From Ascoidea asiatica JCM 7603 (taxonomy: Eukaryota; Fungi; Ascomycota), in the NCBI GenBank assembly GCA_001600695.1, contig BCKQ01000007.1:574788-638787 (forward strand): a stretch of DNA of 64,000 nt, in the 5' to 3' direction. A model generated the notes under the pieces. It was not told the DNA's origin, did not search any database, and worked only from the letters and a program-made list of their open reading frames with translations. Of this stretch, positions 34,726 through 55,727 are shown in pieces. Each line of letters starts with the position of its first letter. The first letter of the stretch is position 1. The position numbers and the translations under genes are program-made.

Positions 34726-37549
34726 TCATCGTTTACCTAAAATCAATGTGTCCATAAAAGGTTCCTCTAATAATATCTCACAATTACTTCTTTTCTTTGG
34801 ATCTATATTAAATATTTTCTTTAAAAAATTTATACCATCTTTTGTAATAATATCTTTACTGGGAAAATTTGGATGATTCAGCATGACTCCAATTTCAAAC
34901 ATTGCTTCTTCAAAATTTAAGTTTGGAAATGGATGAAATCCTGTAATCATTTCAATAATTAAACATCCAACTGACCAAATATCAGAATTCTTGGAATATT
35001 TTAATTCATTTATTACTTCTGGTGCCATCCAATATATTGAACTTTCCATTATTTTTTTCTGAATTCTATTATATTCTTTAATAACTGATTTTATTTCTTT
35101 ATCTTCTTCTTCATCTTTCACTTCTTTATCCTTTGATTTTGTATCATTTCCAATTTTTATTCCGTCTAAAGCTTTTCCTATTTTACTATCACTATAATCA
35201 TCATCTGATATACTTCCATCTCCATTCCAAGTTTCATAATGATAATCGTACTCTATGAAATCATCTTCATTTTCCTCCTTATCAATTGAAGCACTATCAT
35301 CATTTAGTTTATTGAAATTCTTACTTTCTCTCTCATTAAATGTATTGTCTTGATTATTCAATTTTGGAGTTGTCAAACTAGTCGGTGTTAATGTTTTTAT
35401 AATACTATTATCACCAACTTTATTATCTTCTTTATTATCACTATCACTATCACTCGAATTACAAAAATCATCAGATTCTTGACTTTTTTTAGAAACTGTT
35501 TTTAAAATCCCAAAATCAGAAATTTTAACGTATCCGTTGTTATCTATTAAAACATTACCACCTTTGATATCTTTATGAATTATATCCATAGAATGTAAAT
35601 AGTTTAACCCAATTAAAACTTGGGCTGTAAAATTTCTAATCATTGGTTCTTCAAATGGTCCATATTCATTCAACATTGAAGAAATTGATCCACCAGGAAC
35701 ATATTCAAGAAATAAATTTAAAAAATTATAATCTGAATTTTCTTCAAGTTCATAATCATATGTAAATCCAATAAATCTAACAATATTTGCATGATTTAAT
35801 TCTTTTAATTTATTTAATTCATTTTGTAATCTCAAAATTAATTTTTTATTACCATTTTGTTTTTTAATATTTTTTTTAGCTCGCTTATTAGTAATGTCAA
35901 AGTTTATTAGTTTTTTAGATACCTCAAATTGTTTAACTGCCATCAATTCTCCAGTTAATCTATTCATACCAAGATAAACTTGACCTAGTGATCCAATTCC
36001 AATTTTAGTTCCCTTTAACCATTTTTCTGGTCCTAATTTAGTAATTTCTTGCACTAATGACATATCTTTTTGTATTGAAAATTCTTCTTCATCTTCCTTT
36101 TTTTCTTCTTGTTGATCTTGTTGTTGTGGATGACTTTGTTCTTCATCTTCTGTCTCACTACCAAAACTTAAAAAATCATCATCATCCGATATTATTGATT
36201 CACTATTATCAAATTCTACTCCATGATTTTTATCTAAAGAATTATTATTATTATTGCTCACAATATTATTTTCATTGTCTGAATTATTATAAATTACATC
36301 ATTGATAAGATCTTCTTTAAAACTTGTTTTAAAATTTGGACTTATTGATTCATGAATTAAAGAAATTTTACTATTATTTAATAAATTTTTTGGAGATTGA
36401 TTTTGATAATGTATAGAAATTCTTTTATTTGAATTTTTTGTATTTACAGTTAAATTTGAAAAAATTGACATTCTTTTATTATCTTTATCACGATTTGAAA
36501 AAATATTATTCAAGTTAATTGTATTATTATTATTATTGTTATTAGTATTATTATTATTTGTTACATGAGATAAATTTCTTAAATTTGAAAATGATCCAGT
36601 TACAGATGATATTGATAATCCTTTTTTATTTGTATTGCTATTCAATAAAGATTCCTTTATATCATCACTTATATTTAATTCGTTTAAATCAGGTAATTTT
36701 GGAGGCGTATTATTGATATTTGGTGTATTATTTATATTATTATTATTAGTACCATTAATTTCATTATTCAATAATGAAGAAGATGAAGATCCAATATTTG
36801 CATTATGACTATTATAACTATAAAATGAACCCATTGATAATCTAGAAAATGCTTTTGATAATCTAACTGAATTTCGAATAGTATCTCTTAATTCTTTTGG
36901 TTTTGCTTGAGGAAAATATTCAGCTAAATTTATTGAAATTAATTCACTTGGAGGTCTTTGGCCATAAACTTTTAAAAATTCTTTATTAGTATTTGAAGAT
37001 AGTTTTGATGTTAGAGTTGATGAAGAATGTTGTGATAAATGTCTTGAAACTTTTTTTTTCATAATTTTATTATTAAGGGTATCATTTGATGTATTATTAT
37101 TATTATAATTATAATTATTATCATTTATATTATTATTATTATTTATATTATTATTATTCATATTGCTATTACTAACATTATTGATAACTTTTTTATTATT
37201 TGATTTTTTTAACTTATGAGTTGAAGCATCTAAAAAGATTTCAATAATATTATTTTTATTCAACTTTTCAATAGAAGTTGAAACTTTATTTATATTTTCA
37301 TTTACGTTTTCATTTCCATTTTCATTTCCACTTCCATTTCCATTTACATTTACATTTACATTTACATTTACATTTACATTTTCATTTCCATTTTCATTTT
37401 CAGTTTTATATTTCTTTAAATTTGAAATATCTTTTGAATTTATAATTTTTGAAATATCTAAAGGTTTTTCAAAAATTAAAGCATCTTTATATTTATTTTG
37501 TTTTAATTTTGAATTAGTTATAGTTATAGGTTTCTTATTTTCAATTTTA

Positions 37550-37587
<38 letters not shown>

Positions 37588-39087
37588 ATTATTATTATTT
37601 TTATCAGTTTTAATATCAATTAATTGTTTTTTATAAATTTTATTTGAAATTTCAATTGAATTTATATTTGGTAATTCATTTTTTAAGGTTATTATTAATC
37701 TTTCTTTGATTAAAGAATTTTTAACATTTTTACAAAAATTTAATAAATTTTTTAAACTGATTTTTATTGGAATTTGTTCAATATAAAAACTACAATTATT
37801 AGTACTGGTTCTATTACTACTTTTACTATTTGTTTTAGTATAGGAAATATAATAAATATTATAAATAATTTTTGAATTTAAATTATTATTGATGCCTAGT
37901 TTTTTGAATAATTTAGCTAATATTGAAGCAGGTGAATTACAATTTGAAATATCGATTTTTTTAGTTGAACCATCATTGAATATAAAAGTTACAATACTTT
38001 TTATTAAACCTTTACTATTCAATGTTGAAGTAGAACTATTACTATTATTATTCGAAATTTTTGAAATTTTTGATAATTTTGAAAATTTTGAAGAATTTGA
38101 AATGAGGGAGTCATGAGATTGTTTTGTATTTATTAAATTATTTGTGCTTATTGATATCTTACTTTTATTACTTTTATTTGAATTAATACTTTTATTAGTT
38201 TTATCAGATTGATTTGAGTTATTTGAAATATTTGAAATTTTAGATTTATCTGAATGAATTGAATGAATTGAATTATTTGAATTAATTGAAGTATTTGAAT
38301 TTGTTGAATTTAAAGAATTTTTAGAAAAATTTGATAAATTAGAATTTGTTGAAAAATTAGAAATATTTGAATAAGTTGATAAATTTCCAATACTTTTTTT
38401 ATTATTTAAATCCATATTACCATTGTTATTATTTAATATACTATTATAAAGAATTTCATTATCTTTTAAATTATTTAAAAAAGTATTTAGATTTAAATTT
38501 GAATTCAATTTTTTAAATTTTAAAGATTCTATAGAAATTTCAAATTTTATTAAATCACCAACTTTATTAATACCTAATTCTTTTAATAAATTATAGTCTA
38601 ATTGAGTTAATAAATCAAAAGTTATATCATTTTCTTTGAATAATCTATAATATTCTTTACAGTTTATTTCTTCTAACCAAATTTTAATTTGATCATTATT
38701 AATATTGTTTAAATTATTCACATTATTTAAATTTTTGAATTTTAATGAAGATTTATTATTGATTGAATTATTTGATTGATTACTTTTGTTACTTTTATTA
38801 CTATTATTACTTTTATTTGAATTACTGGAATTTCTTAAAAAAGATTTTGAATTTAATGAATTTTTCAAATTATTATTTTTATTTTTCAAATTTATTGAAT
38901 TGTTAGTAAAAGATTTTATTGAAGTTAAGGAAGAATTTCTTTTATTATTAAGGTTATTATTGATATTATTATTTATATTATTATTATTATTATCATCTTT
39001 TAAAGATGAAATTTCTTTTGAATTATGATTATTATATAAAATTGAATTATTTAAACTATCAAAAGATAATTTCCTTAATGCATTCAT
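34726..39087 (-). CDS. STE11: Ste11-family MAP kinase kinase kinase with an atypical catalytic domain
   Basis: SAM domain (WLEEINCKEY...LKELGINKVGD), RA-like domain (TFIFNDGSTKKIDISNC), YGQRPPSELISINLAEYFP, kinase motifs GELMAVKQ, FLEYVPGGS, DFG, YWMAPE, SDIWSVGC. Confidence 0.88.
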
Positions 39088-41363: not shown

Positions 41364-43448
41364 ATGAATAATTCAACTGTAATTCAATTACCTGACTGGT
41401 CAAAAGATTATTTAATAAGCTTAATAAATTTTTCAAAAAGTTTATTATCAACTTTTGAATCTTTACCAGGTGGTTCAATAATTATGAGATATATAAAATC
41501 TTCTTATCAAAATGATCCTTTTAGATCTTTACTTGAAATTTTTTTAATTATATTTAGTTTAAATTATTTTTTATCTTCAAAAATCTCAAAAAATAAAAAT
41601 TTTTATTTAAATTTAAATAAAACTGAAAAAAATTCAATTTTAAAAAATTTTAAACCTTTACCATTAATTAATGATTTAAAACCAGAAGAATTTTATAATT
41701 TGAAAAAAATTCCAATTGTTAATGGTAATAATAATCTTAAATATTTAAATTTAAATTTAAATCCTTATTTAAATGATTATAAAAATCAATATAAAGGTAA
41801 ATTATATAATACAAATAATTTAATCACCAATGAATCAAATAAAACAAAAACTTTTTTAAATAATGTCTTAAATTTAGCTTCAAATGATTTTTTAAATTTA
41901 AGTAATAATAAATTCTCAATTAATGAAGCTTCAAAAGTTATTAGAAACTATGGTGTTGGAGCTTGTGGTCCTCCAAATTTTTATGGTACTTCCGATATTC
42001 AAGTTAATTTAGAAAAAGATTTATCTAAATTTTTTGGTACTGAAAATGCAATAATTTATGGTCAAGATTTTTGTACTGCAGAAAGTATTATACCTGCTTT
42101 TTTAAAAAGAGGTGATATATGTATTGTTGATTCTGGTATAAATTTATCTATTCAAAAAGCAATTATTTTATCAAGATGTAAAGCTTATTGGTTTAATCAT
42201 AATGATTTAAGTCATTTAATTGAAATTTTAGAAAATTTAAAATTTTTAAATATTGGTATTAATGAAAATCCAATTCCAAGAAAATTTATTGTTACTGAAG
42301 GTTTATTTTATAATACTGGTGATTACCCAAATTTACCAAAATTAATTGAAATTAAAAATCATTATAAATATAGATTATTTTTAGATGAAAGTTATTCAAT
42401 TGGTGTACTTGGTAAATCTGGTAAAGGTTTACCTGATTTTTTTAATATTGATAGAAAACAAATTGAAATTACAACTTGTTCAATGGGTAATTCTTTAGCA
42501 TCTTCTGGTGGGTTTTCAATTGGTGAAAATTCAATGATTTTTTATCAAAGAATTGGTTCAAGTGCTGTTTGTTTTTCTGCTTCTTTACCTCCTTATTTAT
42601 CAAAAGTAACTTCATGTTCTTTAAAATTAATTTCTGATTCAATTTCTGAAGAATTAAATTCAAATGGTAAAAAAAAATCATATTTAACAAAATTAAATGA
42701 AATTACAACTTATACTTTCTCAAAATTATTAAAAAATAAAAAAATTTCAAAATATTTCAAAATTACTTCAATCAAAGAAAGTTCAATTATTCATCTAGAA
42801 TTAAATAATAATTTTAAAAATATTTTAGATTTACCTTTATATTATGTTAATGAAAATAATAAAATGGCAAAAACATTAAATGATGAATTAAATTCTTATC
42901 TCAGTCAAGAAGAAGAAGAAGAACAACAACAACAAAATACAAATGAAACTGATAATAAAATTAATAGTGATAATGATAATGATTCTTCAAGCGATTTTAC
43001 TTTAATAGACAATGAAAAATCTGGTGATGATTATGAAAGAGTTGATTATTATTCATCAAATTTCAATAATTCAAAATCCGCTCATTCTACACTAAAAGAA
43101 TTAGACCCAAATTTTATTATAAATCAAAATGAATTAAATTCAAAAGATAATTTAGATATTTATGAGTTATATAATATTGAAAATTTTTTAATCTGTAAAA
43201 TTATTAATCATTTATTAATCAATTATTCAATTTTAATCAATTCTTCAACAAGATCTCTAAAACATGAAATTGTTAAAGTTAATCCACAATTAAAAATTAA
43301 TCTAAGTAGGGAATTGACATTTAAAGAAATTGATAATACTTTAGATTCTTTATCAACTTCAATTAATGAAATTTGTTCAAAATTAAATTCTTTCAATGAT
43401 TTAAAAAAATTGTTTGATACTGATAATGCAGTTAATGATTATAAATGA
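41364..43448 (+). CDS. LCB1: Serine palmitoyltransferase subunit 1
   Basis: RYIKSSYQNDPFRS, YGVGACGPPNFYGT, AFLKRGD, LFLDESYSIGVLG, FSASLP; acidic low-complexity insertion near the C-terminus. Confidence 0.96.
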   Translation: MNNSTVIQLPDWSKDYLISLINFSKSLLSTFESLPGGSIIMRYIKSSYQNDPFRSLLEIFLIIFSLNYFLSSKISKNKNFYLNLNKTEKNSILKNFKPLPLINDLKPEEFYNLKKIPIVNGNNNLKYLNLNLNPYLNDYKNQYKGKLYNTNNLITNESNKTKTFLNNVLNLASNDFLNLSNNKFSINEASKVIRNYGVGACGPPNFYGTSDIQVNLEKDLSKFFGTENAIIYGQDFCTAESIIPAFLKRGDICIVDSGINLSIQKAIILSRCKAYWFNHNDLSHLIEILENLKFLNIGINENPIPRKFIVTEGLFYNTGDYPNLPKLIEIKNHYKYRLFLDESYSIGVLGKSGKGLPDFFNIDRKQIEITTCSMGNSLASSGGFSIGENSMIFYQRIGSSAVCFSASLPPYLSKVTSCSLKLISDSISEELNSNGKKKSYLTKLNEITTYTFSKLLKNKKISKYFKITSIKESSIIHLELNNNFKNILDLPLYYVNENNKMAKTLNDELNSYLSQEEEEEQQQQNTNETDNKINSDNDNDSSSDFTLIDNEKSGDDYERVDYYSSNFNNSKSAHSTLKELDPNFIINQNELNSKDNLDIYELYNIENFLICKIINHLLINYSILINSSTRSLKHEIVKVNPQLKINLSRELTFKEIDNTLDSLSTSINEICSKLNSFNDLKKLFDTDNAVNDYK

Positions 43449-46400
43449 TTCTAAAGATCTATAATCATATCTTTTTTTTATTATTTATAATATTTCTTAA
43501 ATCTCTTCAACTTCTTTTCTCTTCATTTTAAAATCATTTTTAATTTTTTTTTTTCTCTCATTTATTATTTCTTCATTTTTTCTTGAATTTTTGTTTTTAT
43601 ATCTATAATTTTTATCATAATTCTCTTTCTGTTAATTATAACCCTACTTTTACTTTCAATCATGGATCATTTAATTTGATTTTTAATATACTTTTAACTA
43701 ATTTTTAATAAATATTTACTAAATTTTATTTCAATTTTTCTTTTTTTTTTCTTCTTTTTTTATCGTGGTTTAGCTTTTACAGTTTCAAACTCTTTTGGAA
43801 TATTGTACTCTGGATATCTTTTGAGAAACTTTTTAGTATTAATTTATTATTTTTTTAATTTTTCTTTTCATATATAAATTCAAGTAGTGGAATATAGTTT
43901 TTTCAATTTTTATCAGACTTCTTTAATTAATTCAATAATTCATAAATAAGTTTACATTACTTTACACATTCAAAGAACTTACGAATATAATTTAGTACTG
44001 AAATAATTTCATTTTCAATTTCAATGTTAATTTCAATTTCTATCTCGATTTGAGATAAATGTTTTGATTTATTTGAATAAATAATTATAGTTTATTTTAA
44101 TGTACGCATCTTCTCAAAAGTATTTCTTTTTAATTTCATATGAAATTTAACATTTAATTAACCAAATTTCAAAAAGCCCCAGAATTATAATTCCAAATTG
44201 GATTTTTTTTAAATTTTAATTTTTAATGGATTTCAGCTTGCGAAAAAAAAAAGGGAGATTTCAAATTCAAAATTAAAATAAATATATTCACAGGTTGTAA
44301 ATTCAGATACACTTCAATTTGCAGATTAAATGTGCAGATTAATTCACACTCTTTTCAAATTTCTTATCTTATCTGATTTTGAATATATAAGATTCAATCT
44401 CAAAACTGCTTGTCAATATGATCAGCAACTAGTTGATACTGCAAAAAAGTTAATTTCTATTCATCTAAAATTGAATAACTTGTCATTTATAACACCCGTT
44501 AAATTGATTTGAGTTATTTCATCAAAGAAACAGCCTATGAACCATTTTTTTCGACAAAATTAAATTTAATTCTGTTACATCGACCACCATTATCGATTCC
44601 AAAAGTAGAATAAATCTCTCACTTTTAGTTTCTTTTGATTCACATAAAATCCAATAAAATCCAATAAAATCTAATAAACTCAACTCAAACCCAAATTCAA
44701 CATCAACCCATTATAATCTACTGTATAAAATTTCTATTTCACTTTCTTTGAACCAGCTTTTTCTTGGTGTATTAATCCAGCTTTTATTTCAGCTTCTATT
44801 TTACCGACAGTTTCAACTGCTGAGTTTTTTGAATTTTTCAATCAGTTTCGAAGGCGAATTCGGAGCATTCGCAGGCGGAGCACGTTTTTTCCGTGTCGCA
44901 TTTTGGTCCGTGTGCATGGATATCTTATTTTTGATAACCTTAATAACCTGCTGCGGATGAGTACTTCGGAACGGACATTTGTCCGGGTGTGTCTAATTGA
45001 AGGCTTTTTACCAGTTCTGTGGATTGAATAGAACAGCTTCACACTAATTCATTAAATACGCCAATCATTTTATAAACTGCTTGAAAGTAAGCAATTGAAC
45101 TTAATTGCAAGTAAAGCATTAGAATAAAATTAAGGTGGTAGATAAATAGATAGATAGATGATAATCATATTAGTAAATAAAATAATAATGGATAAATATT
45201 ACAAGAAAATGCATAAAAAACGAGATAATGAATAGAGAGAGATACCTTATCTTTCTATTTAACTCACTAAACTGAAATCTGGTGTGAATTTCTTGAAGAA
45301 ATCACGACAATTTTTGCGATTTTCAAACTTATTTTGCATTAGAGGCAGATTTTAAATTAAATATTTCTTTACTTTTCTCATTATTTTCAAAACTAAATGT
45401 TTCAAAAATTTATCAAGTTTAACCCATAATGTTTATTAGATTCCTTTTATCATCGGTTAAAATGAATTCCCATGTTGTTTAAATCACTAAAATATAACAA
45501 AATCTGAAACTTTACAAATTACATACGCCTTCAAGTTTACCATAAATTGATTGTTTTAATAATCACATTATCTGAAAAAAAGTTTATAATTTCAAATGAT
45601 CAAAAAAAGATTAAAAGTATAAATGAAACTCAAATAACAAGTATCTTCAAATTATATTCAACCTTTTTTCAAATTAAAATTCAAACGTGGTTTAATTTTG
45701 ATGATTTAACCACATAATTTGGATTTATTCATCTGCCTATTTTACACATAATGTACTATATGTATGTTAATGGAAGTAAAAATTTAATACAGTACTAATA
45801 ATACTTACTAAATTTCTTTCAAAGCTGCAACACATATTCTTGAATTTTCTTGATATAAAATTTTTTGAATTATATCCAATTTTTATTAAATTTAATCAAT
45901 ATATTCTATTATTCATTATCCATGATCTTTAATTGGAGAATAAAAGGCTTTTCAAAAAATTTGTTACTTCATTATAAATTTTTTTTATCCTATTATATTA
46001 TTGTATAATTATGACAAATAATTACATACTGCAGATTTATTGTTATTTGAGTAAAATATAAAGTGATATTCTTTTAATTTATATGATAACTAGTTTTATG
46101 GCTTGATAAATGAAATCATATTAACTAAACATTCGATCCTTTATTCCCTTTTTTTTTTGTTTTTTTGAAGCAATTAAGGGGAAAATATGATTTTTTTTTA
46201 CAACATAAATGACTTTGAACGAATTTCGGTGTAAATTTAGTGCAAGCTTTGTCATTTGAAAGGAATAAATTCTCAATTCATTAATTAACTAATTTTTTTT
46301 TTATCTGTTTGATTGCTTGGTTGTTCAAGTTTTGATTTTAGTTACTTTATTGAACATTATCTACAATAAAAATCTTTTTAATAAACCAAAAATTTTATTT

Positions 46401-46753
46401 GAAATATGTATACATAACAAAACCTTCCTCTAACTGTATATAGATGAAAAAAAAATTGAATATAAAAAGTTTAAATAAAAACTATGCTTAGAATTAGTAG
46501 AATTAAATAAGTTAGATATTTTTTGATATATAATTATAAGTTAAGCCGATAAATAATAGATAAAGATAAAAAAATAAGCATAATTGTAAAAAATACAAAA
46601 TTATTGAATTGAATAGAAATAAAAACTGAAATTGAAATAGAAATTGAAATTGAAATTAAAATTAAAATTAAAATTGAATTTAAAGTAGAAATTAAAATAG
46701 AAGTTGAAATAGGAATAAAATAAATAGTGTAAATAATTAAAAGAAATAGAATT

Positions 46754-49012
46754 TTACCTACTTAATGGAGGTAGAGTATAGTTATTTGATTTTTCACCTT
46801 CTTTGAAACGATTCAAACTTTCTGAAGCAACATGAGCTAAAGCAGGAAGACGATTATTATTATTATTATTATTGATATTATTAAATGAAAAATCTCTAGG
46901 GGATCCGGAAAATGGAGGTAATTGAATTGAACTATTATTTCTAACTGAACTTTCTTTTAAATTTGAATTTGATCCTGTTAATTCGGAGATTCCTGGTAAT
47001 TTAATTTTATTATTATTGAAATTATTATTAAGTTGATTATTAATTGGGTTATTATAGTTATTATGAATACTAGGAATATTATGAATACTAGGAATCATGG
47101 AAATACTTGAAAGATTGGAAATATTAGATTTATTTGAAGAGTTTGAAATATTAGGATTATTAAAAGTATTTTGATTAAGGTTATGAACATTTTTACTCAT
47201 AGTAATTGGTTGATTTGGCATAACTGGAGAAATATCAAAACTTGGAGAAATTGGAGAACTATTTGTATTTATACTATTATTATATTGACTTGCGTTATAT
47301 TGACTAGTATTATATGGACTATTATTACTATAACTACCATTATTATAATTAGTATTGTTAAAAGTAGCAAAAGAATTTAATGAGGAATTTGAAATATCTC
47401 TATTATGATTAATATTTGAAGGAAATGAATTATTGGTATAATAATGATTTGGTTGAAAAGGGGGTAAGCTTCTACCGGAACTTGATTGATTTGGTAGTGA
47501 AATATGAGGATTAGATGAATTAATATTATTAGGATTATTGTTATTGTAAGTATTGTTATAAAGGTAATGTGCAGGAGCCTGTGATTGAGATGGGGGTTGA
47601 GATGAAGACAAATTTTGTTGAAGAGTTGATGATTGAGAAGCCGTGGATCTATACATTATTGGTTGAGAATAAGTATTAATAGGAGGTGGAATTGGTCTTA
47701 ATTGATTAGGAGGTAGTTGACGTTGATGTTGACGATAATCAAATTGATAAGTTGGTATATGCAATTTCTTTAATGGTTGTTGTTGCTGTTGTTGTTCTTG
47801 TTCTTGTTCTTGTTGAATTTGATTTTCATTTTGCTTATTATTTTTATTTTTGATCTTATTTTTATTAATTTTATTTTTATCTAATTGATTTGAATTAATG
47901 ATTTTTTCATTATTTTGATCATTATTAAAATCATTGAAAGATCTTTTTTTATTTATTGATAAATTATTATTTTTAGTTGATTTACTAATTTGACGTTTTC
48001 TTTGTCTAATTCTAGCACCATGTTTATAAAGAAATCTAGTTAAAGCAGTTGAAGTTAAAGAACCTGGGAAATTTTTCTGAGTATAAACAGTAAATATAGT
48101 ACTTAAAGTTTTATCTAAGAAAATAATTTTATTATTATAGAATTGAAATAAAGAAAAAAGTAAAGCAAATTTACCAGTTTTTCTAACAGATATATCACCA
48201 AAAGCAAAACAAGTTACATAATTATCAGATTTACTTGAGCGCTTAAGATTAAAAATTTGAGATTGATCTTGTTGTGGTTGTTGTTGTTGTTGATTATTTA
48301 AATTTGGAGAAAGATTATTATTATTAATATTATTAGTTGAAGGAATTGAAGGAATATTAATTTTCATACCAGAAACCACTTCTGAACCAAATAAATCATT
48401 TGAATTTGAATCTAAATCATCAAAATTTTTTGAATTTTTTATATTATCTAAATCAATTAATTCAACACGAACAAAATAAGTTGGAAAATGAGACCAAGAA
48501 GGCATTGTACCATTTTTATTTAATTCCGATATAACTTTTGTTGTTTGTTGAAATTCAGGTTCATTATAAACATCATTATTTCTAATTTTTTCAGCAGTAT
48601 CTTTTGTAATATTAATATCATCAAAACTATCAGGATCTGAACAAATATTTGAAACATTAGGTAATATAGATTCTTTTAATTCAGTATTAAATTTTAATTG
48701 AAGTACAGGAGGTGGATGAATTGGACGATGTTCAGATAATGGAGTTGAAGGACAATTACCGCCAAATGAATTTTGTCTTGGAGCAACTTTTGCATGTAAA
48801 GGTTGTTGAATAATATTTAAAGAAATTCTTTTGAATAATTTTTCATTCGAATTATGTGAAGATTCTTGATTAAATTTTACAAATTTTTTTTGTTTTTTAG
48901 TCTCTAGTTTATCATTATTTTGAATATTATTATTATTATTTTGATTATCATCAGTAATAGTTTGTTGTTTACTATCACCTAAGATAAAGGATAAACTAGT
49001 TTTTGTTGACAT
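46754..49012 (-). CDS. Velvet-domain protein (VeA/VelB/VelC/VosA family)
   Basis: LNIIQQPLHAK, RPIHPPPVLQL, LFGSEVVS, FAFGDISVRKTGKFALLFSLF, STIFTVYTQKNFPGSLTSTALTRFLYKHGARIRQRK, the complete ordered set of velvet motifs; N/Q/P-rich C-terminal region. Confidence 0.92.
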   Translation of the reverse strand: MSTKTSLSFILGDSKQQTITDDNQNNNNNIQNNDKLETKKQKKFVKFNQESSHNSNEKLFKRISLNIIQQPLHAKVAPRQNSFGGNCPSTPLSEHRPIHPPPVLQLKFNTELKESILPNVSNICSDPDSFDDINITKDTAEKIRNNDVYNEPEFQQTTKVISELNKNGTMPSWSHFPTYFVRVELIDLDNIKNSKNFDDLDSNSNDLFGSEVVSGMKINIPSIPSTNNINNNNLSPNLNNQQQQQPQQDQSQIFNLKRSSKSDNYVTCFAFGDISVRKTGKFALLFSLFQFYNNKIIFLDKTLSTIFTVYTQKNFPGSLTSTALTRFLYKHGARIRQRKRQISKSTKNNNLSINKKRSFNDFNNDQNNEKIINSNQLDKNKINKNKIKNKNNKQNENQIQQEQEQEQQQQQQPLKKLHIPTYQFDYRQHQRQLPPNQLRPIPPPINTYSQPIMYRSTASQSSTLQQNLSSSQPPSQSQAPAHYLYNNTYNNNNPNNINSSNPHISLPNQSSSGRSLPPFQPNHYYTNNSFPSNINHNRDISNSSLNSFATFNNTNYNNGSYSNNSPYNTSQYNASQYNNSINTNSSPISPSFDISPVMPNQPITMSKNVHNLNQNTFNNPNISNSSNKSNISNLSSISMIPSIHNIPSIHNNYNNPINNQLNNNFNNNKIKLPGISELTGSNSNLKESSVRNNSSIQLPPFSGSPRDFSFNNINNNNNNNRLPALAHVASESLNRFKEGEKSNNYTLPPLSR

Positions 49013-52000
49013 TTTTTTTTAATGTTTATAATAAGATATGTAATATAGAGAATATTAAAGATGTATTAGAGGGTAATGAATATTAAAGTAACAGTTATTT
49101 GGTAAGATTTTAATTTTGTGATTGGTGTAAGAATATTGATTATTGAGTATGTGTTATTAAATGTATAATTAGTTTAGTATTGTTTATATATTTGTATGTT
49201 TGTATGATTGTATGATTGTATGATTGGGTATATTTGTATACAAAGATAGTAAATATATAAGATATATAGGATTTATAACAAATAAAAAATTGAGAAGAAG
49301 TTTAAAAAAGGGAGGAAATTCGGATTATTTATATATTAAACCAAGTTGTTACTTTTAATTTATATATATATATTTATATATTTTGGTAAATATGGTAGTT
49401 ATGAAGTAATAAGTTATGTGGATATGTGAATATGTAAAAAATTAGAAAATTAGATATTTGAAAATTTGGAATTATAAAAGATAAAACATTAAATATAAAA
49501 GATAAAACAATAAGTAATAAAAAAAATGAGTAAACTAGAGTTATTTATTCAGTATATTCAGTATATTTAGAATATTTAGTATATTTGGTATATTTCGTAT
49601 GTAACCAAATTTATATAAAAATGAGTTGGAAAAGATAAGTTATACACTGTTAGTTAACTTAGTTAAGTTAGTTAGGTTAGTTAGGTTAGTTAGTAGTAGT
49701 AAATAATAGATAAATATTAAATGCAGAGGAAAAGTGAGCATGAAAATTGGCGATACCCAAAATTTTGAATATTTTGAATTTAATCGAATTTAATTTTAAT
49801 TTAATTTAATTTTAATTTAATTTTAATTTTAATTTAACTTGAATTTAAATTGGAGAAGCCTTTTAAAATTAGTGGTAAATAATAAAAAAATAGATAAATA
49901 ATATATAGAAGAATAAAAATAACAGACTAAAATGAAATGAATAAAATTAATATGAAAAAATTGATCATTCAAGCAAAAAAATATTCCTCTTTTTAATGTT
50001 TGTGCAAGTCGTTTGAATTAAGGAAAAAAAAGGTAAAAAGGTAAAAAGGTAAAAAGGTAAAAAAATTGGAATAAAAAGGGATTAGAAAGTGAATATGAAA
50101 GTGAATACTGAAATTGATATTGGTATTGGTATTGAGAAAAAGTGAGATGAATTTCATTTTGGATCAAATTTACTGTAATTAGAGAAATACTTGGAATACT
50201 GGCTGAAATACTGGTTAAAAAAGTGATTAAAATACTGGTTAATTATTACAGGTAGATAAATAGAGAGAAATTAAATGAACTTTACAAGATTTTTACAAGA
50301 ATTTTGCTTCGTTCTTCTGCTGCAACTTCCACTGCAGCTGCAAACAAACTGCAAAAGAATTGCAAATGAAACTGTAAATGCAACACCAGCTCAAATAAAC
50401 TGAAAACAACTGAAAACAACTGAAAATAACTCGATTGAACTCGATTGAACTCAAATGAACTCAAATGAACTCAGATGAACTCAGATTAACACAATTCAAC
50501 CCAATATTGAATTCCAAAGACATTTCAAAGACCTTGAGTATTCACCTTTTAAAGAATTTAAATATTTGAATACTTTAGTTTTGTAGGATTATCAAATTTC
50601 AACATGATTTGCAATCATAAATTATCTAAACTTGTTGGTTAGTTGATTAATTGGTTAATTTATTGAATAAATTGAAACAAATTTTAAGCCCAAAGTAAGC
50701 AAAGTAAGTTTTTGAGGAAAGAAAAGAAAAAGAAAAAGAAAAAGAAAAAAGAAGAAGATAAAGAAAATGGGTTTTTGTACTACTAGGCATTACATAATAA
50801 TTGTTTGCTTTATCAATAATATTGAACATATGAAATTTAAAATTACAAAATATGAAATACGTAAATCCTGAGTATGAAATTACAGTATAATTTCAAATAG
50901 TGTAACATTTAACTATAAATTCAAATAAATAATACGAAAAAAAGAGGTTGGTTTAAAATCTTGGTTATAATAAATAACTTTAAGTATTAAGATATTATTG
51001 ATTGTATTCATTATTATATATTTTTGAACAGCTATTGGTTTACCAATATTCAAATCTGAGACACTTAAAAAGATATTTAAAAAGAAAATTTGAAAAAAAA
51101 TAGGAAACTCAAAGGCCATTTGTAACCATGGCTCAGTAAGCAAAGGATTCAAAGAAATTGATCAGTAAATTGAATAAAATGAATAAATTGAATAATCTGA
51201 ATAATTGTAAAAAGTCTGGAAACTATTCGGAAAATACTAAGTGGTTATAAGAATAACACTGTAAATTCACTCAACCACTGCACTTCACTAAGTAAAACTT
51301 GAGGACAAAATTTTTACAGTGGTTAGCATTTCAATTAGTAATAGCAGTAGTTTCAGCCTATTTCAGAATTCAAGCCACCCTTTTGCCTTTGATTTTGCCT
51401 TTACTTTTGCCTTTACTTTCTTCTGAGAGTAACGTTGGTTGGTTAACATTTGTGATTTTTCTCTGCGAATTTCTCTGCTTGATCTTTTGAACCGAGTTTC
51501 CACCAGAAGAATACCAGCACAAGCAGAAAAAGCTGCAAAAGACCCAAAAAAACTCACTTTTTACTGGTGCTGGTGCTTTATGGCGAATACGGCCCTCGTG
51601 TTATTTGCTCTTATCAAGAACAAGCACGAGAATAAGAAGCATTTGCACTTGCATTTGTGTTTGTGTTTGTGTTTGTGTGGTATTTCTGCTTGTCTTTGTG
51701 TTTTGCGTTTTGTGTTTCACGTTTTGCGTCTTAAATGAATGTGCTTGTGATTTAGCCTCAATTTTAATCCCACTAGAACTTCTTCTACCACAAATCACAA
51801 TCTCAATCTCAATCTCAATTTCAGTCTTTATCTTTATCTTTAATTATTATTGTTGTCATATATTCTCTTCTATTCTCCTTTATAGAATCTATTCTATTAT
51901 ATTCTATTCTCTTATATTCTATTCTACTATTCTACTATTCTGCTATTCTACCGTTGACTTTCCTCAATCGTTACTAATACTCTACAGTATAATGGTTTTA

Positions 52001-55000
52001 TTCGCTAAATATTAGTACTACAACTACTAAGGTACTGTAGTATTTATGTAACATTTTATACCCACTGCTGAGTAAGTTCCTGAATCTCGATACGAAATAC
52101 CGCCAATCCACTAAGAAGTTTCTGCACTTTGTGCTCAGCAATTTGCACCTTGTACTTTATGATTGGCGCTTTGTTCTTTGTGTTTTATCAAATTTATGTG
52201 CTTTGTGTGTCTAACAACAAAGAACAAATTCTACTTGAATTTCAACTGCAGCTCTTTGAAAATTTTATAAAGTAACGTTAAGTAACATTATTAATTTGCG
52301 TAAAAAGCGATCAATTTGTTAAAACGTTACCGTTACTTAAACGTTACCTAATCATCAATACCTAAAATTTACCTTAAACACTGTCTGCGATGTAACCTTT
52401 GTACTTTACAAAATTAAATATTGGTGTTATCACTTTCAATGCCTTACTGGTATTTCTGTATAGTGTAAAGTGAAAGAGAGAAAATCAAGAACAAAAATGG
52501 CTTTTTCTCATCCATTTCTCATTTTTCTTTTCTCTTTCTTTAATATATCAATAATTTATCTTCACTTTTCATTTGCTATTAGTGGAAATGTATTAACGTT
52601 ACTTCTTTTATAATTGCAATCCTTGAAATCTCTCTCAATTTTTCAAATACTTAACATTATATCTTTTTTTTTTGCTTTTGCTTTTTCAATCCCCGCTACT
52701 TTTCTTCTAAAATGACTGATCTCATATACCCGGTTCACAAGCAGCAGAGGAATGCAAAAATGCTTCGGTCCCTTCCAGAAAATAACGTTGTGGGTGCAGT
52801 CAAAAGCATTACACCAAAATATTAACATGCTTTTAACATGCTCGTAAAAAAACAAAATGATTCACGTATATTCCTGTTTCTGTGGCGCAATATATCAGGT
52901 GGAGCAGCTTGTGCAATATTTGACTGCCGAAAACCTTGCTAACATCTTCAACCTTTTTGTTTTTCCGGATCATTTGTACCAAAAGTAACAAGCATCGTAA
53001 CACTATTTGAGCCATTAACCAGTCTTTTAAGTTAGAAGTATGTCCCTTATTGGCTAGAATAACTATGTTCATGTATCTAAATACACCTTATTTTATTCTG
53101 TGGCCGCTTTATGCATACAATGGTCATCGTATTGGCCTTATTCCTTACAAAACAGTTATAAATATTGTTAATCGTTATTTACAATTTAAATTGTAACTTG
53201 TATTGTAACTTTTATTGTAATTGATATTTCTTATGCAGGTATTTAACATTCTCTTTTTTTGATTTTTACTCTTTTCTCATGTTTTTCCTTATGTTTTTTA
53301 TCAAGAGTTTTATTTATTATTCTCCTGGTTTTATTTCCAGTTTAAAATTTATGTTTATAACATATGTTTTTTATTAATGGTTTGAAATTATCTGTTTAAA
53401 ATTATAAATAATTTCATCTTTTATCTCAAATCACACTTTTTTTTTTTCTCATTTTATGTATTTATGTCTTAAATATCACAAATTTGGTAAATTCTTTTGA
53501 TTTAATAAAAATATTAAACCAATTTAAAGGTAAATAAATAACTTTTTTAAATCAATTACACTATAATACCAATTTACCAATTCTTACTAATAAAATCCAA
53601 TGATATTTATAGCTTTACTTATTTTGACGAAAATTTTATAATTTAATCATTATTTATACCCATTATAAGAAATAAATAGAAATTAAATATAAAAAATTGT
53701 CTTATAACTTATAATATTATAATATTATTATATTTAACATACAGCTTACATTATATTTATAAAAATATCTTAAAAATTTACCGAAATTGGAAATTTCTTC
53801 ATTCAAGTTTTCTTCTATTAAGAATTCAGATGAATTTCACATTCCTTATAGATATAGATATAGATATAAATATTTATTATTTATTATTTATTCAACTTCA
53901 TTCATTTGTGATAATATAATATACTAAAATATATTTAAAATTATGTAAAGTTAACATTAAAAAAGAGCCACGTGACCCATATATGTCCACCAAAATAAAT
54001 ATTTCTCTTGTTAAAAATTTACAACCTTTAAATTACAACCTTTAAATTACAATTCAAATTTGAATTCAAATTTACTTCGAATTTACTTCGAATTTACTTC
54101 AAATGTAATTTGAATTTGAGCAGCCATGCAGATTTATTCAACAACTATTTCAAATAAATAATAAATAATGGAATAAATAATAGGATAAATAAAGGATAAA
54201 TAAAATTTAATTTATAAATTATCAAATTGTTCATACATCCCCAATTTAGGATAAGATCCGATCGATTATTATAAAATTTGTTTAAAATTTTATTCAAACA
54301 TAAATGAGATAATTCCGGCAAAAATTTTGTAAATTAAATTTTGGGCAAATATATTAATTTAAATATTGATAAACATTTATATAATACTCAATAATTTGAG
54401 AAATTAAGTAAAAAAATTAAACAAATTAAAAAAAAAAAATTTACAAAAAAAAACAATAAAAAAGTAATAAAACAACAAAAAAATTGAAAAAAAAAACAAA
54501 AAAAACAAAGTTAATAAAAAATACATAAACACACACACACACACCACATATTAAAACGCAAATATAATAACCTCCAATTTCATTTTTGATATTATATTTA
54601 ACATAATGCTATATATATATAATAATAATAATATAATAATATAGTAATTTAATAGTATAATAATATAAGGATAGTAATAGTAACAGTAATAGTAAGGTAG
54701 TCATATTTATGGCAATTTAATTAAAAAAAAAAGAAAAAAAACATAATTAAAAAAACATAATTGAAAGAAACAAAGAAAGAAAGAAAGAAAAAGAAAATAA
54801 TAATCCACTTCATTATTTAAATAAGTAAGCAAGTAAGCGAATAAAAAACAATTTTAATAGTATTTTCCAAATATTAGAGAAGAATTTCAGTGAATGAATT
54901 ATAAGTTGAAAAATAATTTTGTAAGTGAGGATGTAATGTAGTAAGCAAATTAATTAGTTTAGATTGAAGATAAAGAAAAAAAGGAACGGATATTAAAAGC

Positions 55001-55169
55001 AACAACAAGACGAATTTATATTAGGATTGGATAACATAAGATAAGATAAGATAAGAGTTTTGGATATGGAGAGATATGATGAACTGAGATTAGATTAGAT
55101 TAGAAGAAATGAAATAAAATAAAATAAGATAAGATAAAAGAGGATAAATAATATTGCAAAAAAGGATTA

Positions 55170-55727
55170 CTATTTCTTCTTTCTACCAAAAAAACTTTTC
55201 TTTTTCTTTTTTTGATCTTGTTTTGGAGCAGGAGCTTTATAAACAGGAACATAAGTATCAGCAGCTGATTGAGTCATACCATTTGTTGTTGCATATGGAT
55301 TCGAATTAAATCCTTTAAATAAAGGATATTCAGGTCTTGGTCTAAAACCATATCTTGAAGTTTCTAATTGATCTTTATAATAATTATCACCAGTTATTGA
55401 AAATTCAAAACTTCTAATGGTATCTAAAGGTCTTTCATCTCTTGATCTTGTTGGATTTGACATATCAACTTGAGAAATTGGATTACCAAATACATCAGCC
55501 ATACCACCATTATTTTGTGACATTTGTGATAATGAATTTCTATTAACATCTTTATTTGAAAATTGTTCATTTGCTTGTTCAAAAGGTTGAGAATCTGTTA
55601 TTGCATCCATTATACGATCTTGTTGTGAAGATTTTGTTTTAAATTTACTTTTATCTTCTTTTGTTATTTTAACATCATTAATTGAATTTTTCTTAGCATG
55701 AGTTGATTTTCTACCAAATACAGCCAT
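55170..55727 (-). CDS. DUF2406 protein, YMR295C/YGR273C-like
   Basis: DVKITKEDK, QPFEQA, DVFGNPISQVDMSNPTRSRDERPLDTIRSFE, QLETSRYGFRPRP, KKKKKSFFGRKKK. Confidence 0.9.
   Translation of the reverse strand: MAVFGRKSTHAKKNSINDVKITKEDKSKFKTKSSQQDRIMDAITDSQPFEQANEQFSNKDVNRNSLSQMSQNNGGMADVFGNPISQVDMSNPTRSRDERPLDTIRSFEFSITGDNYYKDQLETSRYGFRPRPEYPLFKGFNSNPYATTNGMTQSAADTYVPVYKAPAPKQDQKKKKKSFFGRKKK

Follow-up and report, generated by a model that had tools for sequence, protein, structure and literature searches.

From sequence comparisons, the velvet gene at 46754..49012 on the minus strand of the window (the whole 64,000-nucleotide stretch of Ascoidea asiatica JCM 7603 DNA analysed here, from contig BCKQ01000007.1) is intact and native, was inherited vertically, and falls into a small, clearly bounded subfamily shared by Ascoideales and Phaffomycetales. 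Our preferred explanation, to which we assign a probability of about 70%, is that it is a functional Ascoideales velvet gene acting as a developmental regulator with a VelB-type partner. The mechanism is drawn by analogy with VosA-VelB, VeA-VelB and the Histoplasma pair Ryp2-Ryp3. The protein would enter the nucleus and, by way of the velvet beta-sandwich, dimerise with a second velvet protein, for which the six VelB-type paralogs in the genome are the most plausible candidates; the dimer would then regulate a developmental programme, such as sporulation, spore maturation or the choice between yeast and hypha, the protein would bind DNA, and its disordered tail and short conserved motifs could recruit cofactors.

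The velvet gene and its protein

The gene is a single uninterrupted open reading frame from ATG to TAA, with no internal stops and no need for an intron, and the N-terminus of the encoded 752-residue protein aligns with its orthologs from the first residue. It contains no CTG codon, so its translation is unaffected by the CUG-Ser code of Ascoideales.

The Pfam Velvet profile (PF11754) matched the protein with an E-value of 4.9e-21 and 76.3 bits, against a cut-off of 25, and a six-frame search of the genome with the same profile scored the gene at 78.8 bits. The match covers residues 64-340 (47993..48823, minus strand) and profile positions 2-236 of 237, in agreement with the complete domain that the initial annotation had placed at about 48820-47990. 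The AF2 model of the domain (pLDDT 79.9, pTM 0.77) was compared with the PDB using Foldseek, and the best seven matches were all VosA, VelB or VeA, with a probability of 1.00 and target-normalized TM scores of 0.58-0.75 (0.67 for VelB and 0.63 for VeA), followed by STAT and NFAT. Profile, predicted fold and structural matches thus all bear out the earlier claim of a real velvet-family gene, with the Rel/NF-kB-like beta-sandwich typical of the family; a language-model atlas search again returned "velvet" and nothing further. The velvet signatures QQP..A, RP.xPPP, F.F.D[LI]SV, FPG...ST.L and G.RIR.RK are all present, and vary little or not at all across the subfamily.

Several features outside the common velvet core were located by ortholog alignment. 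Near the N-terminus is the motif K-[ST]-S-[IL]-x-F-[IL]-L (KTSLSFIL, aa 4-11; 48980..49003, minus strand); 11 orthologs, drawn from two yeast orders, all share K4, F9 and L11, and nearly all share S5 and S6. Inside the domain, a subfamily-specific helical insertion (aa 138-165; 48518..48601, minus strand) is kept in the orthologs with the consensus ...SxERxEELKVIxxLR..., and the AF2 model predicts helices there at model residues 81-88 and 95-108, with pLDDT 59-91 across the block. A second insertion, in a domain loop, is N/Q-rich, of low complexity and species-specific (aa 226-256; 48245..48337, minus strand), being missing or much shorter in the orthologs; model residues 182-203, which lie over it, have pLDDT values below 50.

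The domain ends in a basic stretch, GARIRQRKR...NKKR (GARIRQRKRQISKSTKNNNLSINKKR, aa 332-357; 47942..48019, minus strand), in which G332 to K339 are invariant in the 11 orthologs. This corresponds to the NLS-like stretch described earlier, and from its composition it may serve as a nuclear localization signal; a K/N-rich stretch follows at aa 372-396. The remainder of the protein (aa 358-752; 46757..47941, minus strand) is a disordered N/S/P/Q-rich region with no match to any Pfam family. The tail rich in N, Q and P with LPP/LPG motifs, as originally noticed, was recovered by composition and motif scan: aa 421-752 include 76 N, 59 S, 34 P and 20 Q, and six LP[PGA] motifs start at aa 433, 516, 672, 698, 722 and 747. 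One of these lies in KIKLPGISEL (aa 669-678; 46979..47008, minus strand), which is conserved across orthologs, as K-I-[KR]-L-P-S-[IL]-[ST]-x-L at or near the C-terminus in Ascoidea and Saccharomycopsis, and as KLPS[VI] in Wickerhamomyces. Another lies in a second tail motif, SIQLPPF (aa 695-701; 46910..46930, minus strand), whose A. rubescens counterpart, read from the open frame without splicing, is SICLPPI.

Class, loop A and predicted partner

The layout of the protein, with an N-terminal velvet domain, a basic NLS-like stretch and a long disordered tail, is by sequence of the VeA/VosA type and not of the VelB or VelC type. VelC proteins carry the velvet domain at their C-terminal end, and here it occupies aa 64-340 of 752. 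In VelB proteins the domain is often interrupted by a long insertion. The VelB signature ARMCG..DKDRRP is replaced here by HAKVAP...SEHRP, VelB was the weakest of the three PDB velvet matches with the subfamily profile, and the six VelB-type genes of the genome (L001-L006) form one clade (100/99), separate from the subfamily.

Between VosA and VeA the signals are divided. VosA, the spore-maturation regulator of Aspergillus nidulans (PDB 4N6Q, 4N6R), shares the near-N-terminal domain, the basic stretch and a disordered C-terminal half, and is the top PDB match both by sequence (47.8 bits with the single sequence, 70.3 bits with the profile, both slightly in favour of VosA) and by fold (4n6q, TM by target 0.75). 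The clade containing Pezizomycotina VosA also takes most of the best matches of the profile search outside the subfamily. However, this clade (100/99) leaves out the subfamily in the maximum-likelihood tree, and the protein differs from VosA in having a helical insertion, a longer loop A and an N-terminal motif of its own. VeA, the light-dependent developmental regulator (PDB 9I2S), shares the N-terminal domain, a long disordered tail, a similar size class and a long loop separating the QQP..A motif from RP.DPPP, but its single-sequence PDB score with the window protein is just 20 bits. The best tree makes the subfamily the sister group of the three VeA-leaning paralogs of the genome (UFBoot 98, SH-aLRT 88), on long branches that raised the long-branch warning of the tool; the best PDB match of these paralogs is itself VeA, weakly (50 vs 39 vs 27 bits). 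[quoted passage not shown] The phylogeny that had been suggested for assigning a class separates the subfamily from the VosA clade and gives it a VeA-leaning sister group, but a placement with VosA was not rejected by the AU test (p 0.405). Sac-VeA is one of two dominant velvet clades of Saccharomycotina in a 2024 survey, whose supplements contain no by-clade listing of Ascoidea, Wickerhamomyces or Cyberlindnera jadinii proteins.

The most distinctive part of the domain is loop A, the DNA-contact loop of VosA, which is lengthened and re-written in the window protein (HAKV...SEHRPIHPPP, aa 73-102; 48707..48796, minus strand). Compared with VelB, VeA and VosA, it has 7-11 additional residues, and in the subfamily the motif EHRPIHPPP replaces the near-universal DRRPIDPPP. 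Mutagenesis of VosA showed that the well-conserved basic patch of this loop (K37, K39, R41 and K42) is required for DNA binding, with K37 and K39 mattering most (PMC3876986). These four residues align to P, S, H95 and R96 of the window protein, so that only the K42 equivalent is retained of a patch that is a functional trait of VosA and not a formal criterion of the family. None of the 17 subfamily members has a basic counterpart of K37 or K39. In 130 other velvet proteins four loop-A columns read, in order, K/R (105), R (122), R/K (124) and D/E (123), whereas in the subfamily the same columns read S/G/Y, H (15/16), R (16/16) and H (14/16), the second and fourth being those of R41 and D45. As the VosA-type basic patch is largely lost, it is uncertain whether this protein binds DNA directly in the way VosA does.

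These changes bear on an alternative that we regard as unlikely, although far from negligible: that the protein keeps the velvet fold, no longer binds DNA itself, and acts as a modulatory subunit altering the activity, localisation or DNA specificity of VelB-type or VeA-like partners, that is, as a regulatory member of an expanded velvet network and not a DNA-reading one. The missing lysines, the two histidines and the longer loop all argue for it, as would the predicted heterodimer described below. On the other hand, R96 is kept, as are two basic residues where the lengthened loop begins, K75 and R79; all three are invariant or nearly so and might restore a basic patch. The GARIRQRKR end, basic and strictly conserved, and a tail resembling an activation domain would also suit a transcription factor. 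Less probable still, in our estimate, is the proposal that the subfamily makes up a fifth kind of ascomycete velvet, restricted to yeasts and with a rebuilt DNA-contact loop, serving as the regulatory subunit of a 10-15-gene network that sets growth form or sporulation in Ascoidea-type yeasts. If true, such a velvet, having lost the lysines and exchanged an arginine and an aspartate for two histidines, might not itself read DNA, or might read it in a manner dependent on pH or metal.

A search for partner velvets had been recommended in the initial annotation. Nine further solid velvet genes were found, six VelB-type and three VeA-leaning, making ten with the window gene, plus up to five weak ones; single-sequence genome searches with two weak velvet-like ORFs gave no close copies. 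The VelB-type paralog L001 (151 bits to VelB vs 77 to VosA and 70 to VeA) was modelled in complex with the velvet domain of the window protein, giving an ipSAE of 0.75 against 0.00 for the best control, a mark that 51 of 78 solved complexes attained, as did 2 of 108 mismatched pairs. The runs had at least 56% of contacts in common and a partner pLDDT of at least 66. A heterodimer with a VelB-type paralog is supported in silico, but the prediction may reflect memorisation of the solved VosA-VelB structure (4N6R) and does not indicate which of the paralogs, if any, is the true partner.

As to the companion suggestion of looking for LaeA, no LaeA-like methyltransferase stood out among the 17 Methyltransf_23 matches of the genome, judged by this profile in place of a LaeA reference sequence, and the best six of them resemble ordinary housekeeping methyltransferases. 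LaeA is stated to be absent from Saccharomycotina in a 2026 review (PMC13006574).

Subfamily, descent and earlier reports

An exhaustive profile search of 1.84 billion representative proteins returned 12 matches at 218-466 bits, and the next best match scored 99 bits. Named members are limited to Ascoidea, Saccharomycopsis, Wickerhamomyces and Cyberlindnera, with A. rubescens as the nearest named relative. An ortholog is carried by Saccharomycopsis species (P0008, P0002 cluster); a 2.7-kb Logan contig containing a Saccharomycopsis ortholog lacks a poly(A) end and cannot be called a transcript. In the maximum-likelihood tree the subfamily is monophyletic (100/98), the window gene groups with that of A. 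rubescens (100/99) and the Ascoideales members group together (92/92), congruent with the yeast orders. Alignment of 11 orthologs from the two orders revealed 59 invariant columns, and at the DNA level the C-terminal part of the domain is 79% identical to A. rubescens, against 73% for LCB1; both indicate selection on the gene.

This conservation leaves very little probability for a decaying relic, open by chance and lacking selection or expression. Of the ten solid velvet genes it does score lowest with Pfam, and it has large low-complexity insertions, but the low score is common to the whole subfamily, pointing to a conserved property and not to decay of one copy, and the invariant columns include the short N- and C-terminal motifs. 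A frame that stays open for 752 codons likewise speaks against it, since stops appear readily at a genomic GC content of about 25%, and the pseudogene reading was rejected on these grounds.

Vertical retention, as originally proposed, is sustained by the surroundings of the gene. The adjoining genes are typical of budding yeasts by their Pfam identities (a Ste11-type kinase, a peroxiredoxin, an LCB1-type aminotransferase, DUF2406, HRI1, a cyclophilin and a sugar transporter), and composition is shared as the initial annotation had described, with a GC content of 24.8% in the gene vs 25.1% in the window, and a GC3 of 8.2% vs 4-17% in the other long ORFs. The order cyclophilin-DUF2406-long gap-velvet/LCB1 is common to the window and A. 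rubescens. The LCB1-type aminotransferase gene (41364..43448, plus strand; Pfam Aminotran_1_2) is convergent with the velvet gene, and the DUF2406 gene lies at 55170..55727 on the minus strand; both have A. rubescens counterparts in the same placement relative to velvet, and for LCB1 the orientation also matches. The neighbours are similarly diverged, with amino acid identities of 52% for LCB1 and 58% for DUF2406, against 45% overall and 54-62% in the domain for the velvet protein. Horizontal transfer from a filamentous fungus, or contamination, might be suspected from the lack of velvet in the best-known yeasts, but it is effectively refuted by composition indistinguishable from that of the neighbours, by the conserved neighbourhood, by a gene tree that follows the orders of its closest relatives, all budding yeasts, and by profile scores of at most 99 bits for all non-yeast proteins.

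In filamentous fungi, velvet proteins act as master regulators of both development and secondary metabolism. The model yeasts lack them, and PMC7539958 reports none in S. cerevisiae and C. albicans, as the initial annotation had stated. No functional work on a budding-yeast velvet gene came up in the literature search, consistent with the expectation that the gene is uncharacterised. The further suggestion of an undescribed system did not hold, because velvet genes were catalogued in part of Saccharomycotina in the 2024 survey, 12 were reported in Saccharomycopsis fibuligera in 2016 (PMC5106798), and UniRef already lists the A. rubescens ortholog as "Velvet domain-containing protein". The S. 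fibuligera expansion concerns the same yeast order and a copy number similar to that found here, but the paper gives a Pfam count only, with no subfamily analysis, partner assignment or function, and velvet is not mentioned in its supplements. The value of the present gene is therefore that of a well-characterised candidate and not of a discovery, the presence and expansion of velvets in these yeasts being already published.

The closest functional analogy is Ryp2/Ryp3, the velvet pair steering yeast vs hyphal growth in the dimorphic ascomycete Histoplasma. Ryp2 and Ryp3 are Pezizomycotina orthologs of VosA and VelB, whereas the subfamily of the window gene is confined to yeasts and has an altered loop A. 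Ryp1-4 are named as required for yeast growth in PMC12505909. Wickerhamomyces and Cyberlindnera are mainly budding and not markedly filamentous; the presence of the subfamily in them weakens a simple tie to filamentous habit and does not imply a hypha-specific role. These two genera are also more tractable carriers of the same subfamily, and the window gene and its nine to fourteen paralogs offer defined targets for studying the role of velvets in a budding-yeast body plan, in Ascoidea and Saccharomycopsis as well.

The upstream region

The gene is preceded by a 6.2-kb gene-free region (49013..55169) with no ORF of at least 150 aa, which is probably a promoter or regulatory region; a comparable gap of about 8 kb lies upstream of the A. 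rubescens ortholog. Searches of this region for Rfam families and tRNAs were negative, and tblastx against A. rubescens detected no coding similarity. Comparison of the upstream and downstream spacers with A. rubescens (blastn, tblastx) for conserved non-coding sequence gave just AT-rich low-complexity matches. A cluster of AACGTT or GTAACGTTAC-like sites was found at 51431..52789, 2.4-3.8 kb upstream of the velvet ATG, and holds 9 of the 14 TAACGTT matches and 6 of the 13 AACGTT cores of the window. In A. rubescens, three of the four matches to the upstream-site motif in 21.7 kb fall within 3 kb upstream of the ortholog.

Gene structure and predicted fold

The velvet-family gene, on the reverse strand (window 46754-49012), is an uninterrupted ORF that starts with ATG, stops at TAA and has 752 codons. 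The Pfam Velvet family (PF11754, cut-off of 25 bits) matched residues 64-340 over model positions 2-236 of 237 with 76.3 bits. The domain thus lies at nt 47993-48823 on the reverse strand, nearly identical to the approximate 48820-47990 of the initial annotation, which had rightly regarded it as complete. It closes with GARIRQRKR and is followed by a second basic cluster (NKKR), a K/N-rich stretch and a C-terminal tail of ~330 residues that is enriched in N, S, P and Q and carries six LP[PGA] motifs, much as the basic stretch and the N/Q/P-rich tail with short LP motifs had been described. The native composition and typical yeast neighbourhood were also confirmed: the GC content is 24.8% vs 25.1% in the window, third-position GC (8.2%) is in line with the other long ORFs, and the surrounding genes are typical of budding yeasts, one of them belonging to the yeast-specific HRI1 family. 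A Ste11-type MAPKKK with SAM, Ras-binding and kinase domains (window 34726-39087, reverse strand), an ordinary yeast signalling gene, is found ~8 kb from the velvet gene. Ascoideales use the CUG-Ser code (PMC11342251), which is irrelevant to the translation of this gene, since it contains no CTG codons.

An AlphaFold2 model of residues 58-345, based on a 69-row alignment, had a mean pLDDT of 79.9 and a pTM of 0.77, with low-confidence zones in a species-specific N/Q-rich loop insertion and in part of loop A. The best seven Foldseek matches in the PDB were all velvet domains, followed by STAT and NFAT proteins; TM-scores by target were 0.75 for VosA (4N6Q), 0.67 for VelB (4N6R_B) and 0.58-0.63 for VeA (9I2S).

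Origin and extent of the subfamily

The closest public protein is ASCRUDRAFT_8110 of Ascoidea rubescens, with 51% identity over the domain. In both genomes, cyclophilin and DUF2406 genes are followed by a long stretch devoid of genes (6.2 kb in the window vs ~8 kb in A. rubescens), then by velvet and, convergent with it, an LCB1-type aminotransferase gene. The flanking LCB1 and DUF2406 proteins are 52% and 58% identical to those of A. rubescens, a divergence on a par with that of the velvet protein (45% identity overall, 54-62% in the domain). The shared gene order and equally diverged flanks therefore argue that the gene is native and orthologous to that of A. rubescens, and rule out horizontal transfer. 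The source of the genome is an Ascoideales yeast other than A. rubescens.

A profile built from the N-terminal region and domain of eleven orthologs and run against 1.84 billion cluster representatives recovered 2281 velvet proteins at E <= 1e-3, of which just 12 scored 218-466 bits, the next one falling to 99 bits. All the named members of this subfamily come from Ascoidea, Saccharomycopsis, Wickerhamomyces or Cyberlindnera (orders Ascoideales and Phaffomycetales). In a maximum likelihood tree of 84 rows, which left out the canonical Aspergillus references, the subfamily was monophyletic (UFBoot/SH-aLRT 100/98), the window gene grouped with that of A. rubescens (100/99) and the Ascoideales members were placed together (92/92). 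Tree and distribution are consistent with vertical descent which, combined with the published yeast phylogeny, suggests that the gene was present in the ancestor of Ascoideales and Phaffomycetales and was lost in the Saccharomyces lineage. The vertical retention proposed initially is thus supported by synteny, flank-like divergence and monophyly.

The eleven orthologs share 59 invariant alignment columns. The subfamily is marked by the motif K-[ST]-S-[IL]-x-F-[IL]-L at the extreme N-terminus, a helical insertion within the domain (residues 138-165, predicted with moderate-to-good confidence), the invariant basic domain end GARIRQRK, and the tail motifs KIKLP[SG]I[ST]xL and S-I-x-L-P-P, the latter also found in the A. 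rubescens gene when read unspliced. The public model of ASCRUDRAFT_8110 (L013 10001-11751, in the A. rubescens locus) splices out a C-terminal intron; when read through, the frame stays open over the rest of the annotated range and encodes SICLPPI, the counterpart of SIQLPPF in the window, and the annotated splice may be wrong.

Velvet genes are already on record in budding yeasts: a 2024 survey, with Cyberlindnera fabianii in its data set, listed them for a part of the Saccharomycotina (PMC10845976), and the 2016 genome paper of Saccharomycopsis fibuligera counted 12 of them (PMC5106798). No functional study of any budding-yeast velvet gene was found in the literature. The gene is therefore uncharacterised but not undescribed: the initial annotation was right in its observation and in part in its interpretation, as the velvet circuit is uncharacterised but not an undescribed system.

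Paralogs, class and putative partner

The genome contains ten solid velvet genes by Pfam search, so that the suggested search for partner velvets yielded nine besides the window gene. Three weak matches were also found, and a broader profile added two. These five ORFs (C6:912015-913499, C3:573929-574864, C20:202367-202831, C4:1315748-1316227 and C20:140437-140913) have weak, partial matches of 19-44 bits, mainly to the central and C-terminal portions of the domain, and may represent either highly diverged velvet-like genes or matches arising by chance. Six paralogs (L001-L006) form a single lineage-specific VelB-type clade (100/99) bearing the ARMCG..DKDRR motif; against PDB sequences, L001 scored 151 bits for VelB vs 77 for VosA and 70 for VeA, and the domain of L006 is interrupted by a ~500-residue insertion. 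The other three (L007-L009) lean to VeA. Four of the ten solid genes, the VelB-type L005, L001 and L002 and the VeA-leaning L007, are grouped in a 140-kb stretch of contig 4 (419-560 kb), and the VelB-type L003 maps to contig 7 at 518 kb, 56 kb before the window. The genome gave 17 matches to Methyltransf_23, none of which was recognised as a LaeA candidate. A 2026 review reports LaeA as absent from Saccharomycotina; it says the same of velvet proteins, and is wrong on that point (PMC13006574).

Among the ten solid genes, the window gene scored lowest against the Pfam model. At the sequence level, the subfamily analysis shows this to be conserved divergence of the whole subfamily, which excludes decay as the cause.

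In layout the protein resembles VeA and VosA and differs from VelB and VelC. Single-sequence scores against PDB sequences were 47.8 bits for VosA vs 20 for VeA, and profile scores were 70.3 (VosA), 65.7 (VeA) and 54.3 bits (VelB). The best tree placed the subfamily as sister to the three VeA-leaning paralogs (98/88), both on long branches that raised the long-branch warning of the tool, and an AU test did not reject its grouping with the VosA-containing clade (delta lnL 4.08, p 0.405). The evidence is mixed, pointing both to a VeA-derived and to a VosA-derived subfamily.

On the precedent of the solved VosA-VelB dimer, the window domain was modelled with the VelB-type paralog L001. The predicted complex had an ipSAE of 0.75 (best control 0.00), a mark that 51 of 78 solved complexes attained, as did 2 of 108 mismatched pairs, but it is like a complex already solved, so that the score may show likeness only and does not discriminate among family members. 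The runs had at least 56% of contacts in common, with a partner pLDDT of at least 66. With these caveats, the predicted pairing suggests, by analogy with VosA-VelB, that the protein would act in the nucleus as a velvet heterodimer, which could regulate a developmental programme.

The main rival reading, a modulatory subunit that does not bind DNA, turns on loop A, where the subfamily shows its most notable change. In VosA this loop makes contact with DNA; K37, K39, R41 and K42 are each required for binding, and the K37A/K39A double mutant loses it (PMC3876986). The subfamily was compared with 130 other velvet proteins drawn from the profile search. The K39 column, K/R in 105 of the 130, is S, G or Y and never basic in the subfamily; the R41 column (R in 122/130) is H in 15/16, and the D45 column (D/E in 123/130) is H in 14/16. 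The near-universal DRRPIDPPP becomes EHRPIHPPP, and loop A is 7-11 residues longer. On the other side, the K42 column (R/K in 124/130) is R in 16/16, and, at the loop start, the conserved basic residues K75 and R79 may make up for the altered ones. The joint exchange of R and D for histidines appears to be coupled.

Non-coding DNA around the gene

The 6.2-kb upstream region contained no long ORF, Rfam family or tRNA and, apart from AT-rich repeats, nothing in it resembled A. rubescens, whether as coding or as non-coding sequence. It includes a cluster of palindromic AACGTT / GTAACGTTAC-like sites (window 51431-52789), 2.4-3.8 kb upstream of the velvet ATG, with 6 of the 13 AACGTT cores of the window. 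In A. rubescens, three of the four TAACGTT sites of the 21.7-kb locus lie within 3 kb upstream of the ATG (L013 7066, 8562 and 9838), which is suggestive of a conserved candidate cis-regulatory element. Neither of the two ORFs in window 52643-53106 had a Pfam match, and window 51300-53200 had no second copy in the genome save short microsatellite-like matches.

Downstream, window 44751-45046 folded only slightly better than shuffled sequence (z -2.08 on the forward and -1.37 on the reverse strand); it is single-copy in the genome, with no Rfam match. The spacer between velvet and LCB1 (window 43449-46753) measures 3305 bp vs 647 bp in A. rubescens; the excess of ~2.6 kb, slightly richer in GC, is thus peculiar to this species.
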